This document shows, piece by piece, positions 4,293 to 48,487 of a stretch of 48,487 bases of DNA. Each line of letters begins with the position of its first letter. The first letter of the stretch is position 1. Source of the stretch: Octopus bimaculoides (Eukaryota); assembly GCF_001194135.2 (NCBI RefSeq), contig NC_068989.1:22060545-22109031 (forward strand), in the 5' to 3' direction. Position numbers and translations under genes: made by a program. Below the pieces are notes generated by a model. That model saw nothing but the letters and a program-made list of their open reading frames with translations. It had not been told where the DNA came from and ran no database searches.

Positions 4293-4472
4293 TCAAAAGC
4301 TTATTCGCGCATTTTTCCGTCCGTTCTGAAATCTTTAATGATGATGCTGGAATTAGACTACACGACCACATTCCACAACCTATTCCTAGAAAACACCATC
4401 ACTTATACAGCTGTTTACATTATACTAATTTTGTACGTCATCCTTATGCCTTTTCTACTGATGAACTTACTG
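4293..4472 (+). CDS. TRPA1: TRPA1-like channel exon: pore helix, selectivity filter, S6
   Basis: Pyrimidine tract plus TTTAG acceptor at 4292 and GTACGT donor at 4473; 180 nt, phase 0-0. Translates SKAYSRIFPSVLKSLMMMLELDYTTTFHNLFLENTITYTAVYIILILYVILMPFLLMNLL, which aligns with human TRPA1 SIIQTFSMMLGDINY...FVPIVLMNLL. Confidence 0.9.
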
Positions 4473-4582
4473 GTACGTATTTGTTTCTTTTCCCTTTGAG
4501 TTGGTTTCATATCGCTGAAGCTCTTTCTCCCTGCTCTCTGTAGGTGAAAAGAATGATGTTCGACACATGAAGAAAATAAAAG

Positions 4583-4988
4583 AAGGCGGCGAGATGGCAG
4601 AAACGTTAGCACAACGGGCGAAATGCTTCGCGGTATTTCGTCTGCCGTTAAGTTCTGAGTTCAAATTCCGCCGAGGTCGACTTTGCCTTTCATCCTTTCG
4701 GGGTCGATAAATTAAGTACCAGTTACGCACTGGGGTCGATGTAATCGACTTAATCCGTTCGTCTGTTCTTGTTTGTTCCCTCTATGTTTAGCCCCTTGTG
4801 GGCAATAACGAAATAGGTATTTCGTCTGCCATTACGTTCTGAGTTCAAATTCCGCCGAGGTCGACTTTGCCTTTCATCCTTTCGGGTCGATAAATTAAGT
4901 ACCAGTTATGCACTGGGGTTGATGTAATCGATTTAACCCCTTTGTTTGTCCCCTCTATGTTTAGCCCCTTGTGGGCAATAAAGAAATG
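4583..4988 (+). mobile_element. Dimeric Nin/Deu-domain-like SINE
   Basis: tRNA-like head (GAGTTCAAATTCC B-box) plus GTCGACTTTGCCTTTCATCCTTTCGGGGTCGATAAA central domain; one full copy followed by a 5'-truncated copy; flanking repeat GAAGAAAATAA(A/C)AG. Confidence 0.8.
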
Positions 4989-5477: not shown

Positions 5478-5706
5478 CGGCGAGCTGGAAGAATTGTTAG
5501 CACGCTGGGCGAAATGCTTAGCGGTATTTCGTCTGCCGTTACGTTCTGAGTTCAAATTCCGCCGAGGTCGACTTTGCCTTTCACCCTTTCGGGGTCGATA
5601 AATTAAGTACCAGTTACGCACTGGGGTCGATGTAATCGACTTAATCCCTTTGTCTGTCCTTGTTTGTCCCCTCTGTGTTTAGCCCCTTGCGGGTAGTAAA
5701 GAAATA
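5478..5706 (+). mobile_element. Nin/Deu-domain-like SINE with TSD
   Basis: Same family; 16-bp direct repeat AGAGAGGTACTATGGA at 5462-5477 and 5707-5722. Confidence 0.85.
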
Positions 5707-5945: not shown

Positions 5946-6014
5946 ATCGGTTTAGCCGTCGGAGACATTGAATCCATTCAAAAAAACGCAGGTCTTAAAC
6001 GCCTTACTATGCAG
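5946..6014 (+). CDS. TRPA1: TRPA1-like exon: end of S6 and TRP-like helix
   Basis: TTCCAG acceptor and GTAAGT donor; 69 nt, phase 0-0. IGLAVGDIESIQKNAGLKRLTMQ vs human IGLAVGDIAEVQKHASLKRIAMQ. Confidence 0.95.
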
Positions 6015-7250: not shown

Positions 7251-7361
7251 GTAACAAGTCATACATCAATTGAAAGAATGCTGCCAAAACGACTTCTGAG
7301 ACGGTTCAACAAAGAAACTTATAGGGTTTTCCCCAACGAGAAAGGAAAATGTTCTAGCAGT
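7251..7361 (+). CDS. TRPA1: TRPA1-like exon: post-TRP helix region
   Basis: TTGCAG acceptor and GTAAGT donor; 111 nt, phase 0-0. VTSHTSIERMLPKRLLRRFNKETYRVFPNEKGKCSSS vs human VELHTSLEKKLPLWFLRKVDQKSTIVYPN. Confidence 0.92.
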
Positions 7362-8392: not shown

Positions 8393-8490
8393 ATTATGAA
8401 GCAATCTCAACTCTCAAACTACGATAAATTCCAAAATATTGAGATATCTGCAGATAAAATAGACTGGGAAATGCGAAAACAGAACCAAAG
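8393..8490 (+). CDS. TRPA1: TRPA1-like exon: linker into coiled coil
   Basis: CCACAG acceptor and GTAAAA donor; 98 nt, phase 0-2. IMKQSQLSNYDKFQNIEISADKIDWEMRKQNQ(R); the end matches human LEMEILKQKYR and the spacing from PN is within one residue of human. Confidence 0.85.
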
Positions 8491-8998: not shown

Positions 8999-10280
8999 TT
9001 GGGTTGTCCGGAAAATTCGTGCCGATTTATAGTAGCTTACCTTTCGACTTATTTAGAACATGGTTGAGTCCATAAAATATGATTTGACTACACCTCCATT
9101 TAGAGCAGAGTTTAAGCTATCTTTTCGTGGAAGAAGGCTTATGTTCCTATAGCCTGTGTTAATTCTGTAACCCTTTAAAATGTAAGATAAGAAAGTTCAT
9201 TTTCGGCACTTGATGCTTTTCTTTTTCCGTAAAGGGAAAAATGCCTCACAAGCAACCAAAGAAATATGCGCAGTTTACGGTGATGTTTCTTTATCTGAAA
9301 TAACTGTACGTAAGTAGTTCGCAAAGTTCTGAGCTGGAGATTGTAGCCTTATTGATAAAGAACGATCAGGCAGACTATCCACTACAGATGATGACCAAAT
9401 CAAGTCATTCATTGAGAATAACCCACATTGCACAACCCGAGAATTGGCAGAAAGCCTCAACCTATCAAAATCCGTCGTTCATGAGTACCTAGTAACTCTT
9501 GGGTACACTAATCGCTACGATGTTTGGGTACCACATGAGTTGAGTGAGAAGAACCTTATGGGTCGCATTTCCATCTGTGATTCGCTTTATAAACGGAATG
9601 AAAACGCGCCTTTTTTAAAGCAAATTGTGACAGGTGATGAGAAATGGATTACCTACCTAAATGTTCAGAGAAAGCGATCCTGGAGTAAGCGACATGAGCT
9701 ACCCTTAGCCACCCCAAAAGTGGGTCTTCACCCTAAAAAAGTCTTGCCTTGTGTCTGGTGGGATTGAAAAGGAATTCTGTACTATGAGCTTCTCCCAAGT
9801 AACTAGACAATTAATTCTGAGAAATATTGCACACAACTGGACGAGTTAAAAACAGCAATTCAAGAGAAACGTCCAGAATTGGCCAACAGGAAGGGTATTG
9901 TTTTCCAGCATGATAATGCAAGACCGCACGTTTCTTTTGGAACCAGACAAAAATTGCTGCAGCTCGGCTGGGATGTGTTACCCCACCCTCCATATTCACC
10001 AGGTATTGATCCTTCGGATTTCCACTTATTCAGGTCTCTGCAGAATAGTCTTAATAGTAAAACTTTCAATTCCTTGGATAACGTAAAAAATACCTTGATG
10101 AATTCTTTGCCATGAAACCACTTCAAATCTGGGAAGAGGGTATTTTCAAGTTAAAGCAAAGATGGAGACGCATTGTGCAACAAAATGGTTCATATTTGGT
10201 TGATTAAAAATGCAATGGCAAGTATTTATTGACCTTTTTCTTTCCTTTAAAAATCGGCACGAACTTTCCGGACAACCCAA
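8999..10280 (+). mobile_element. Full-length decayed mariner transposon (mellifera-like subfamily) in the last TRPA1 intron
   Basis: 30-bp TIRs TTGGGTTGTCCGGAAA(A/G)TTCGTGCCGATTT at 8999-9028 and 10251-10280 with 1 mismatch; TA on the left, CA on the right; 1282 bp long. Confidence 0.95.
9180..10207 (+). pseudogene. Mariner D,D34D transposase pseudogene
   Basis: WVPHEL, TGDEKW, HDNARPH and HPPYSPGIDPSDFHLF motifs; 34 residues counted between the 2nd and 3rd Asp. At least 5 in-frame stops (including codon 2) and a frameshift in the A-run near 10086. Confidence 0.95.
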
Positions 10281-14448: not shown

Positions 14449-14647
14449 GTTGAAGTCTATACAGAGTATGATGGAAAGCCAGCAAGAGATGATCCGTATG
14501 ATTACACAGAAAATGGAGATATGTACAGAAGATGATTTTGTCGATGAAGGTGAAAACTTTACCGAGTGTATGGGAACTGACCTCAGTAACGGGGAAAACC
14601 AAGTGAAACGGTGGAAAAGCTTTGTTGAAAAGAAAGTCAAAAAATAA
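14449..14647 (+). CDS. TRPA1: TRPA1-like terminal coding exon: C-terminal coiled coil and stop
   Basis: Long pyrimidine tract plus ACACAG acceptor, phase 2 start. (R)LKSIQSMMESQQEMIRMITQKMEICTEDD...KKVKK* vs human RLKDLTFLLEKQHELIKLIIQKMEIISETED. Confidence 0.9.
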
Positions 14648-24682: not shown

Positions 24683-24864
24683 GTTTAACGTCCGCTTTCC
24701 ATGCTAGCATGGGTTGGACGATTTGACTGAGGACTGGTGAAACCGGATGGCAACACCAGGCTCCAATCTAATTTGGCAGAGTTTCTACAGCTGGATGCCC
24801 TTCGAAATGAAAATGAAAAAAAAAAAAATGCAAGTATTTAATCAAAACAAACAAAAATATTCAC

Positions 24865-25033
24865 CTGATAAGACCAAGGTTTGTCAGTTTTCATTTCAAT
24901 ACATTGAAAGCCAGACGTCATAACTTTGCCCTGAAACACAGTTCCCTCTGGGTAAGTTGACATGTCAATTGCTTCACCAAAATCAATTAATGTCAATAGC
25001 ATTGGAACCTTCAGATCAGGTGATATTTTCTTC
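24865..25033 (-). CDS. BUB1: BUB1 kinase exon: DFG and activation segment
   Basis: AAG acceptor after a pyrimidine tract and GTGAAT donor; 169 nt, phase 2-0. LTLIDFGEAIDMSTYPEGTVFQGKVMTSGFQCIEMKTDKPWSYQ vs human [42 protein letters not shown]. Confidence 0.95.
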
Positions 25034-25979
25034 CTTTTTAGTTGAAAGAAACAGAAACAGAATGACATTAATAATATCTGCATTGAAGATTTCATTATTA
25101 GAAAATACTTTTTTTTTAAACCGGAAAAAAAAAATTAATAAAATAAAATACTATAATTCTTAATTATAGCTATTAAGTGCAAGTAAGTGCCTTGCAAACA
25201 ACTGATTGAGCAATCCACTTCATTATAACAAATGTTCCATGTGGCAATTCTACTTTCTGTATCTTTGAAAATTGGAAGTTAATCTTATATAAATATATTT
25301 GTTTTTAAAAATAACCATACAATTACAAAACCTACCACTCATTCCTGAGAGGAATGAGTTTCCATAATAATTTGAAATCATTATCCAGAAGAACTACAGT
25401 TACCTATTTTGCACCATTGTACTCTAAGTTGCAGGCTCCATACATCTATTTATATTCAACTAAACACAGGAACTTATATATTATATCCACAAACAACGAG
25501 ACTTTTCATGACAGAGTGTATTGCAGAGACCTAGATGAGACAGAACTACAGACTTGTCTCTTCTATTGCTGTGCTACATCTACAGGGCAACACAGCTCCA
25601 ACCATGAGCCAGCTCAAGTGCAGTTAAGGTACTCAACACCAATAACACCACAATCAAGATACTAAATCTACAGCCTGATATCTGATAAATGCTAACATGA
25701 CCTAAAGAAAATATATAACAATACATATAGCCTATATATATAAGGTAGATGAATGAATAAGGAAAAACATTGTTTACTCCTTACTTGGTGGTCATCATAC
25801 CACTTATTTAAACCTGGAGGTATCCTGTGAAGAGATGTTGAGCAAAACTCAACAAATCGGGCACTCCTACCTTGAGACAAGAGACTTTGCTCTTAGCTCC
25901 AATTGATTATATATCAAAATTATAACCTAATGTGCACTTGATGACTGTTTCTACCACAAAGATCAAATAAAAGCCATAC

Positions 25980-26140
25980 CTGAGTTTGATGACAATGTTG
26001 TCTGGTTTGATGTCTCCATGTATTATTTTACACTTGTGTAGACGATCAACAATAGTTAACAATTCAATGAGAAAGTAAACAGCCAACGCCTCACAAGTAC
26101 TGCTGTTGCACAATTCTGCTTGTTTCTTGTTTACAAAATC
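25980..26140 (-). CDS. BUB1: BUB1 kinase exon: catalytic loop
   Basis: ATGTAG acceptor and GTATGG donor; 161 nt, phase 0-2. ...ALAVYFLIELLTIVDRLHKCKIIHGDIKPDNIVIKL(R). Confidence 0.95.
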
Positions 26141-32426: not shown

Positions 32427-32522
32427 NNNNNNNNNNNNNNNNNNNNNNNNNNNNNNNNNNNNNNNNNNNNNNNNNNNNNNNNNNNNNNNNNNNNNNNNNN
32501 NNNNNNNNNNNNNNNNNNNNNN
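32427..32522. other. Assembly gap (96 N)
   Basis: N run next to a (GA)n microsatellite, in a BUB1 intron. Confidence 0.99.
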
Positions 32523-34499: not shown

Positions 34500-35160
34500 A
34501 CCCCCTCATCACCAAACAGCTAATGAGCTTAATCAATGAGTTGCCCTTCATTCATCATTGAAGAGTAGATTTGCTGGTGAACCTTTCTTGGGTAGAATCA
34601 TCACATGTGATGAAAAGCAAGTTCTCTACAATCACATCCAACAAAAACAACAAATGTTAACGCTCAAAGAAAAAGCAGAATCCATCTCTAAACCTGGACT
34701 TCACCCGAAAAGTGTTATGCTGTTTTTGGTGGAATATAAACGGTCTCATTTATCCTGAAGTGTTAAACCAAAACAAAACAGTTAATGCAGAGAAGTATAG
34801 TCTTTCAACAAAAGCACTGCATAAAAATTTGCAGAAAATATGCTTGTCACTGGTCAGTCATAAAGTGGTGTTACTCTTACGCAATAATGCAAGAGCACCA
34901 CCAACATGGAAAATGGATGATGATGTTGATGACATATAACCCAAGTCACTCAGGAAAAGATTATGGCACAACATACAGAAGTTTTACTTAACCTTCCGTA
35001 CTCACTTGACCTTGCTCCATCTGACTAACATCTTTTCAGATCATAACAACATTGTTTAGAAGGAAAATATCTTATTAATTGTGAAGTGGTTAAAAACGAT
35101 ATTGAGTATTTCTTTGCTTCAAAAACTGAAGAATTGTATGCTTGAAGGATCAAACTGTAT
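34500..35160 (+). mobile_element. Highly decayed mariner transposase remnant in a BUB1 intron
   Basis: Fragments FLGRIITCDEKQVLY, LHPKSVML, WWNINGLIY, NNARAP and PYSLDLAPSD*HLFRS in broken frames; TIRs not identified. Confidence 0.8.
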
Positions 35161-42814: not shown

Positions 42815-43532
42815 CATATTAGATATACCAGCTAAATTTCTAGACATATTAGATATACCAGCTAAATTTTTAGGCATATTAGATATACCAGCTAAATTTC
42901 TAGACATATTAGATATACCAACTAAATTTCTGGACATATTAGATATACCAACTAAATTTCTAGACATATTAGATATACCAACTAAATTTCTAGACATATT
43001 AGATACACCAGCTAAATTTCTAGACATATTAGATATACTAGCTAAATTTCTAGACATATTAGATACACCAGCTAAATTTCTAGACATATTAGATATACCA
43101 GCTAAATTTCTAGACATATTAGATATACCAGCTAAATTTCTAGACATATTAGATATACCAACTAAATTTCTAGACATATTAGATATACCAACTAAATTTC
43201 TAGACATATTAGATACACCAGCTAAATTTCTAGACATAGATACACCAGCTAAATTTCTAGACATATTAGATATACCAGCTAAATTTCTAGACATATTAGA
43301 TATANNNNNNNNNNGCTAAATTTCTAGACATATTAGATACACCAGCTAAATTTCTAGACATATTAGATATACCAGCTAAATTTCTAGACATATTAGATAT
43401 ACCAGCTAAATTTCTAGACATATTAGATATACCAGCTAAATTTCTAGACACATTAGATATACCAGCTAAATTTCTAGACATTAGATATACCAGCTAAATT
43501 TCTAGACATATTAGATATATCAGCTAAATTTC
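42815..43532. repeat. 30-bp minisatellite, about 24 units, interrupted by an assembly gap
   Basis: Unit CATATTAGATATACCAGCTAAATTTCTAGA; variants at a few positions and two 27-bp units. Confidence 0.95.
43305..43314. other. Assembly gap (10 N)
   Basis: N run inside the 30-bp minisatellite, so the true array length is unknown. Confidence 0.99.
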
Positions 43533-43748
43533 TCTATCATACTTTTTTCACTGAATGCATAATGTATTTTAAGATAAATTTTATTTCAAGAAAAAGAAAA
43601 CACAGTGTTAATAGCTGGAACTTCTCTGATCCACAGGGCTGCTCAATCAATGCTGACCTATGCTGATTAAGCAACAACAGTAACAATCATAATGAAGAAC
43701 ATGAAAATGGATGATATTTTGAAGGGAGAGCAAATGAAAGATAAATAC

Positions 43749-48219: not shown

Positions 48220-48487
48220 CAACAAACTGGTTAGTAAGCATAGACAATCTGGCTAGGCAGCACAGACAATCTGGCTAGGCAGCACAGACAATCTGGCTAG
48301 GCAGCACAGACAAGCTGGCTAGGCAGCACAGACAAGCTGGCAAGGCAGCACAGACAAGCTGGCTAGGCAGCACAGACAAGCTGGCTAGGCAGCACAGACA
48401 AGCTGGCTAGGCAGCACTGACAAGCTGGCTAGTCCGCATTGACAGGCTGGCTAGTCAGCACCAACAAACTGGCTAATTAGCACCAAC
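48220..48487. repeat. 22-bp minisatellite running to the window end
   Basis: Unit GGCAGCACAGACAA(G/T)CTGGCTA, about 12 units with degenerate flanking units. Confidence 0.92.

Follow-up and report, generated by a model that had tools for sequence, protein, structure and literature searches.

Octopus bimaculoides TRPA1 shares a selectivity filter without the conserved glycine with other named molluscan TRPA1 sequences

Does the absence of a single glycine from the selectivity filter of a TRPA1-like channel mark the gene as altered or failing, or does it reflect a condition that the gene shares with its relatives? This question is raised by an exon at positions 4293-4472 of a 48,487-nucleotide stretch of Octopus bimaculoides DNA (contig NC_068989.1, forward strand), the whole of which is referred to below as the window. 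From its letters alone, an earlier reading had concluded that the filter had lost its glycine codon through a clean deletion, and it took the locus for a special paralog with altered or absent permeation, a dominant-negative or modulatory subunit, or a gene in early decay. To answer the question we examined the exons of the gene, the alignment of the filter, its distribution across animals, and the condition of this particular copy.

The TRPA1 exons and the alignment of the filter

The exon belongs to the annotated TRPA1 gene of O. bimaculoides, LOC106868019 on chromosome 9 (assembly GCA_001194135.2), which has a gene range of 140.6 kb and the RefSeq protein XP_052826291.1 (P0226 in our protein set). 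Five of its exons, all on the plus strand, lie in the window. The pore exon (4293-4472) is an open frame of 60 codons with phase 0 at both ends and with ag and gtacgt at its boundaries; frame 1 translates without a stop into SKAYSRIFPSVLKSLMMMLELDYTTTFHNLFLENTITYTAVYIILILYVILMPFLLMNLL, and the remaining two frames are closed. It corresponds to residues 791-850 of XP_052826291.1, matches the pores of human and Drosophila TRPA1 in HMMER, and codes for the post-S5 linker, pore helix 1, the selectivity filter, pore helix 2 with the turret, and S6 as far as LLMNLL. Downstream of it, both tblastn and HMMER identified an exon for the end of S6 and the TRP-like helix (5946-6014, IGLAVGDIESIQKNAGLKRLTMQ) and another for the post-TRP segment (7251-7361, VTSHTSIERMLPKRLLRRFNKETYRVFPNEKGKCSSS), and HMMER also identified an exon for the linker preceding the coiled coil (8393-8490, IMKQSQ...DWEMRKQNQ), which ends in phase 2. 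The terminal coding exon (14449-14647), recognised by HMMER and by its identity to RefSeq, contains the C-terminal coiled coil LKSIQSMMESQQEMIRMITQKMEI, an acidic stretch, a basic tail and the TAA codon at 14645-14647. The splice sites of all five exons are canonical, there are no internal stops, and the frame runs to the TAA. When spliced, the exons yield a C-terminus of 218 residues with 100% identity to residues 791-1008 of XP_052826291.1, which confirms the earlier statement that the four exons beyond the pore exon are intact and in frame.

For this C-terminus, an exhaustive protein search covering 1.84 billion representatives returned nearest relatives that were all TRPA1 or TRPA1-like. 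Against solved structures, the 218 residues gave HMMER E-values of 1.4e-35 for Drosophila TRPA1 and 1.3e-28 for human TRPA1, both aligned end-to-end, with TRPV3 as the next family at 7e-4. The parts in correspondence with human (6V9V/3J9P) and Drosophila (7YKR) TRPA1 comprise the pore helix, S6 (MP[IF]LLMNLLIGLAVGDI), the TRP-like helix, the post-TRP segment and the coiled coil; the last of these aligns with human LKDLTFLLEKQHELIKLIIQKMEI and is predicted to be helical in an AlphaFold2 model of the relative P0122. The succession of S6 and a TRP-like helix of the type IGLAVGDIxxxQxxAxLKRxAMQV, a TRPA1 feature, is present as LLMNLL followed by IGLAVGDIESIQKNAGLKRLTMQV across exons 4293-4472 and 5946-6014 and into the exon starting at 7251, and IGLAVGDIE was invariant in the alignment of relatives used for modelling. 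Outside the window, the RefSeq protein carries a long N-terminal ankyrin array (Ank_2, E=7e-66, multiple stretches). This array, the acidic residue at D915 and the aromatic residue at Y918 are features that the octopus protein shares with human and fly TRPA1, which are chemo- and thermosensitive non-selective cation channels. Also, introns flank the octopus pore exon at the positions that a vertebrate TRPA1 entry implies. The same classification has been reached in a 2026 survey of cephalopod TRP channels, where XP_052826291.1 (LOC106868019, chromosome 9) is placed in the alpha-TRPA (true TRPA1) clade and a second alpha-TRPA paralog of O. bimaculoides is listed on chromosome 3 (PMC13402157 Table S1). 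The table gives a length of 1367 aa for XP_052826291.1 (151 kDa, predicted cytoplasmic), as against 1008 aa for the sequence used here. Judged by its sequence, the region at 4293-4472 is thus assigned to a TRPA1-type channel gene of the alpha-TRPA clade.

With regard to the filter itself, bases 4338-4361 read ATG ATG ATG CTG GAA TTA GAC TAC, exactly as had been noted, and the selectivity-filter codons CTG GAA TTA GAC TAC (L-E-L-D-Y) occupy 4347-4361, as established by direct reading and by tblastn, HMMER and MAFFT. The octopus filter, MML-ELDY, is one residue shorter than MMLG(D/E)xxY, and it has L-E-L-D where other phyla have L-G-(D/E)-x-(D/N). Three aligners placed the missing residue alike, in agreement with the sequence-only reading: tblastn, in comparison with arthropod exons and a human TRPA1 C-terminus; HMMER, with human TRPA1 6v9v (from which the numbering L913-G914-D915 is taken) and Drosophila TRPA1 7ykr as references; and MAFFT, in an alignment of 104 TRPA sequences. 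In all of them one residue is missing after Leu (CTG, 4347-4349) and before Glu (GAA, 4350-4352), opposite human G914, and the octopus Glu aligns with human D915. In the HMMER alignments the gap faces the Gly of SMMLgELDF in the fly and of SMMLgDINY in the human protein. The anchors on the two sides, A-[FY]-S ... [KR]-[ST]-x-x-M-M-L upstream and E-x-D-[YF] downstream, are in register only with the gap at Gly. An ungapped alternative in which Gly stands opposite Leu was rejected because the RTF/KSL and A[FY]S anchors then fall out of register. The L-G-(D/E) filter motif is therefore incomplete in the octopus protein, in which the Leu and the acidic residue are present and the Gly is absent. The octopus L-E-L-D differs accordingly from L-G-D-I-N of human and L-G-E-L-D of fly TRPA1; its turret is also shorter, and Thr and Asn replace the human outer-vestibule acids E920 and E924.

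A second one-residue gap before S6 had been proposed as well, and ascribed with less certainty to a Pro. Such a gap is indeed needed in HMMER against both human and fly TRPA1, but its placement differs between the two. Since the turret, the loop before S6, can be as short as about 12 residues in one TRPA1 and longer than 60 in another, and since the placement differs, this gap is not attributable to any particular residue such as the Pro.

Distribution of the Gly-less filter across animals

Every named molluscan TRPA1 that we recovered shares the gap at the filter Gly. These are the TRPA1 of Aplysia californica (XP_012937566, LLL-EIDF), Biomphalaria glabrata (XP_013078350, LIF-EIEY), Bulinus truncatus (KAH9488095, 1172 aa, MML-ELDY) and Candidula unifasciata (CAG5121392, MML-EVDY), and full-length proteins of 1155-1190 residues are included. 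The Gly is likewise absent from P0223, a cephalopod-like protein derived from Logan transcripts (MML-ELDY) with a C-terminal tail closely similar to that of the octopus, and from three unnamed full or near-full relatives (P0122, P0227 and P0244). Within this group of nine sequences, the MAFFT alignment shows no variation at the filter Glu, at the acidic residue that stands two positions after it, or at the aromatic residue, and the context MML-E-[LVI]-[DE]-[YF] of the octopus is that of the molluscan alpha-TRPA clade.

The Gly is kept in TRPA sequences of the annelid Lamellibrachia, the flatworm Macrostomum, the hemichordate Saccoglossus, the tick Ixodes, insects, vertebrates and the cnidarians Nematostella and Acropora, as well as in the echinoderms Antedon, Holothuria, Apostichopus, Amphiura and Anneissia (crinoids, sea cucumbers and a brittle star). 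It is substituted rather than deleted in the starfish Patiria (by Ala), and other residues replace it in a nemertean and in an amphioxus paralog. Because none of the named molluscan TRPA1s has the Gly, the L-G-(D/E) motif does not define the TRPA1 clade. Alignment with molluscan TRPA1s had been suggested as a check on the sequence-only reading, and its outcome is that the gap is shared and hence not specific to the octopus gene. The idea that the gap singles out a special paralog (one with absent permeation, a dominant-negative role or early decay) is not supported by this comparison, as all named molluscan TRPA1s have the gap and the annelid keeps the Gly. A missing Gly, in other words, does not signal a broken or unusual gene; it is normal for molluscan TRPA1.

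We then consider the origin of the gap. A neighbour-joining tree of 80 sequences was built on 183 columns that take no information from the gap. The nine Gly-less sequences, and no others, fall together in it, and the octopus protein is sister to P0223 with a bootstrap value of 90/100. It should be underlined that strict monophyly of the nine obtained a bootstrap value of 14/100 with these 183 columns, so that the case for a single origin rests mainly on the shared rare indel and on taxonomy. On these grounds the most likely history is a single deletion of the Gly codon in an early mollusc, prior to the split between gastropods and cephalopods more than 500 million years ago. The Gly-less filter would most likely be an inherited ancestral state of the molluscan clade that has been kept under selection, and not a lesion of the octopus locus; when applied to all molluscs, this statement is an extrapolation from gastropods and one octopus, no bivalve, chiton or nautilus TRPA1 having been identified by name. 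No report of a Gly-less filter shared across molluscan TRPA1 was found in the literature searched, including by searches with the motif strings.

The filter Gly is also absent from two arthropod-type TRPA1 exon fragments outside the window, P0026 (AMMM-ELNF) and P0168 (AMML-EVDF). Their S6 and TRP helix are of arthropod type and lack the mollusc intron, and we regard their loss of the Gly as independent of the molluscan one.

The shorter pore loop

Two elements make up the upper gate (selectivity filter) of human TRPA1, namely the side chain of D915 and the backbone carbonyl of G914, and upon activation this gate dilates (bioRxiv 10.1101/2019.12.26.888982). D915 forms the constriction and sets the handling of divalent ions, and the D915E mutant conducts approximately as the wild type does, with a pore that is narrower by about 2 Angstrom (PMC5100928). 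A precedent for a TRPA pore without the Gly is provided by TRPA5B of Rhodnius prolixus, in which the equivalent of Gly914 is absent, 'Leu913 and Glu914 form a shorter pore loop', and heat-activated currents are produced; insertion of a Gly into TRPA5B disrupted its modelled fold (PMC10993193). A Gly-less filter in functional invertebrate TRPA channels, a finding that the sequence-only reading had named as one that would speak against it, is thus on record in kind. The Leu and Glu of TRPA5B keep the positions of L913 and D915, and the octopus L-E at 4347-4352 aligns with the same two residues. TRPA5B, which was compared here by description and not by sequence, is a member of a different, insect-only subfamily (TRPA5), and its loss of the Gly is therefore independent of the molluscan loss. 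Thus, a whole animal lineage and at least two insect or arthropod lineages independently run TRPA channels without the Gly of the human upper gate, and molluscan TRPA1 is a new lineage of an already known variant.

The fold of a Gly-less filter region was modelled for the relative P0122 by AlphaFold2 from 38 sequences (mean pLDDT 70.5; pore-region blocks 87, 72 and 62). The predicted structure retains pore helix 1 (PGLSLLRTSMMM), pore helix 2 and S6, and the two pore helices are connected by a non-helical loop of four residues, F-E-L-D. The top structural matches of the model were TRPA1 structures, with TRPV6 far lower.

In our judgement there is a good probability that the annotated octopus TRPA1 carries a clade-wide, inherited loss and that it has a cation pore with a filter loop one residue shorter, in which Glu stands for D915. 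In such a pore, the Glu directly after the Leu would take the place of human D915 at the constriction, and the backbone carbonyl of G914 would be either lost or supplied by the Leu. The pore loop would be shorter and probably tighter or stiffer, with cations presumably still conducted as in the Gly-less TRPA5B, and the upper gate may be tighter or less dilatable. Conservation within the clade together with the insect TRPA5 precedent suggests that the molluscan Gly-less TRPA1 most likely forms a conducting cation pore. The altered permeation envisaged for the octopus gene is possible as well, although as a trait of the whole molluscan clade rather than of this gene. Our literature search found no electrophysiology of any molluscan TRPA1. 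Paired mollusc and vertebrate channels give a handle on the part that the Gly plays in pore size, calcium preference and filter dilation.

A stronger proposal is that TRPA1 has been re-engineered across molluscs, so that side chains (L-E-x-D) line an upper gate of reduced length and permeation or gating is measurably changed. We hold this as tentative and rather doubtful. If it were true, the possible changes would include a narrower pore, a higher affinity or selectivity for divalent ions, or the lack of an agonist-dependent filter dilation as seen in the human channel, and octopus and snail irritant and heat signalling would use a biophysically distinct TRPA1. Less likely still, as an addition to this proposal, is that the octopus chromosome 9 copy is truly devoid of S3-S5 and functions as a modulatory subunit consisting of the pore only. 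TRPV5 and TRPV6 have a Gly-less T-I-I-D filter and are highly Ca2+-selective, and the acidic side chain that follows the hydrophobic residues at the end of their pore helix forms the constriction. They belong, however, to a different subfamily with only a fold-level likeness to TRPA1, and the comparison says nothing on Ca2+ selectivity in the octopus channel.

Condition of the octopus copy and the remainder of the window

As far as it can be judged within the window, the octopus copy appears healthy. Conservation across the TRPA1 clade reaches at least 85% at 43 positions, of which the octopus C-terminus retains 37, and the six changes are all conservative; the median number of deviations at such positions is about 2, and Aplysia and Biomphalaria have 11 and 10, respectively. 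Compared with the molluscan clade, the octopus chromosome 9 copy has MPFLL for MPILL and LTMQV for LAMQV, and its turret is 3-4 residues shorter, less acidic and without the PYTD motif. Its branch in the neighbour-joining tree is longer than that of P0223, which makes it the faster-evolving member of the pair.

The RefSeq model as a whole is unusual. In XP_052826291.1, S2 (...EIVQLIQQ) is joined directly to the pore exon (SKAYSRIF) at window position 4293, and S3-S5 are absent. Of the transmembrane domain, the window thus codes for the part from the pore helix to S6, and the RefSeq model adds S1-S2 and skips S3-S5. By comparison with Bulinus, the model also lacks the pre-S1 stretch RVECLxHPLCxxFLxMKW and about 55 ankyrin residues, the affected part lying at approximately residues 470-790. 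The RefSeq protein has no Pfam Ion_trans match, and P0223 has one. Searches of the window for S3-S5 or other upstream exons, by tblastn with three molluscan proteins and by a profile HMM in six frames at maximum sensitivity, found none, and the window therefore begins within the intron preceding the pore exon.

These features can be read as signs that the chromosome 9 copy is a decaying or non-channel paralog devoid of S3-S5, either poreless or acting as a modulatory or dominant-negative partner of the chromosome 3 paralog, in which case the Gly-less filter would be incidental. The jump from S2 to the pore exon with the accompanying losses, the missing Ion_trans match, the lack of an S3-S5 exon in the 4.3 kb that precede the pore exon, the longer branch, and the shortened and less acidic turret all agree with this explanation. 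So does the result that three queries of a word-indexed protein collection returned no octopus orthologue and no transcript fragments of the chromosome 9 copy, although this silence carries little weight, as the index also missed the identical RefSeq protein. Against decay stand, on the other hand, the five open exons, which have canonical splice sites and keep 37 of the 43 highly conserved positions. The missing parts are also of whole-exon size and in frame, as annotation yields when exons fall into assembly gaps, and the window itself holds two runs of N. Furthermore, the O. vulgaris counterpart on chromosome 9 (QHX41565.1, MN081858), which is transcriptome-derived, is listed at 1112 aa and so exceeds the octopus model by about 104 residues, approximately the size of S3-S5 (PMC13402157 Table S1). 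P0230, a vertebrate-type TRPA1 entry of 821 aa, has the identical S2-to-pore junction (...EIFQLIQQ joined to QTYSTP...), which points either to annotation that repeatedly skips these exons or to a conserved isoform from which they are left out in frame. On balance we consider the decaying or non-channel paralog unlikely, though a case that deserves to be kept in mind. The RefSeq model of octopus TRPA1 is probably incomplete through a defect of assembly or annotation, which matters for studies of cephalopod nociception that use it. The missing S3-S5 are, in any case, a matter separate from that of the glycine.

A recent one-codon deletion confined to the octopus gene, leaving an altered or dead pore, is what one would propose from human and insect TRPA1 alone, against which the locus shows a clean 3-nt loss in a conserved motif. 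It is very improbable, given that the same gap occurs in the same MML-E[LV]DY context in gastropods whose separation from octopus dates back more than 500 million years, as well as in a second cephalopod-like sequence. An artefact of sequencing or assembly at 4349/4350 can be dismissed almost entirely, for even though the assembly is gapped and based on short reads, the in-frame loss of 3 nt falls at exactly the position missing in independently sequenced molluscs, and the earlier view that it was no typical sequencing error stands. The inherited, clade-wide loss in a TRPA1-like channel with a filter one residue short of that of vertebrate and insect TRPA1, on which HMMER and the alignments agree, thus remains the preferred reading.

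The remainder of the window is AT-rich (about 36% G+C), with many short interspersed repeats and microsatellites. A minus-strand frame at 17427-17386, 2.7 kb beyond the stop codon, reads AHTTIERKLPFLFLE and resembles the TRPA1 post-TRP motif HTxLERKLP; 27 nt of it (17427-17401) are 85% identical to part of the exon at 7251-7361. A second TRPA gene on the minus strand was considered and rejected, because the similarity extends over these 27 nt only and no other exon has a partner. The frame may be either the relic of an inverted exon copy or a chance match. Further to the right, exons of a BUB1-like kinase lie on the minus strand from 24841-26140 onward, where IIHGDIKPDN is encoded near 26026 (Pkinase, E=3e-5) and LIDFGEAIDM near 24990; the gene called next to TRPA1 contains Mad3_BUB1_I and Pkinase and stands tail to tail with it.

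Mobile and repetitive sequences are found both in and beyond the TRPA1 introns. Pfam detected frameshifted remnants of mariner/Tc1-type transposases (Transposase_1 with HTH) on the plus strand at 9333-10112 and 34661-34936, the former within the 6-kb intron preceding the last TRPA1 exon. A SINE-like repeat of about 170 bp is present in at least 14 copies with 72-93% identity, at 4540-4800, 4816-4973, 5478-5689 and at least 11 other places, and the three copies specified crowd the intron right after the pore exon. The two N runs are a gap of 96 N at 32427-32522 and one of 10 N at 43305-43314, the latter interrupting a tandem array of about 24 copies of a 30-nt unit (42815-43533), and an array of a 22-nt unit occupies the end of the window (48237-48475).
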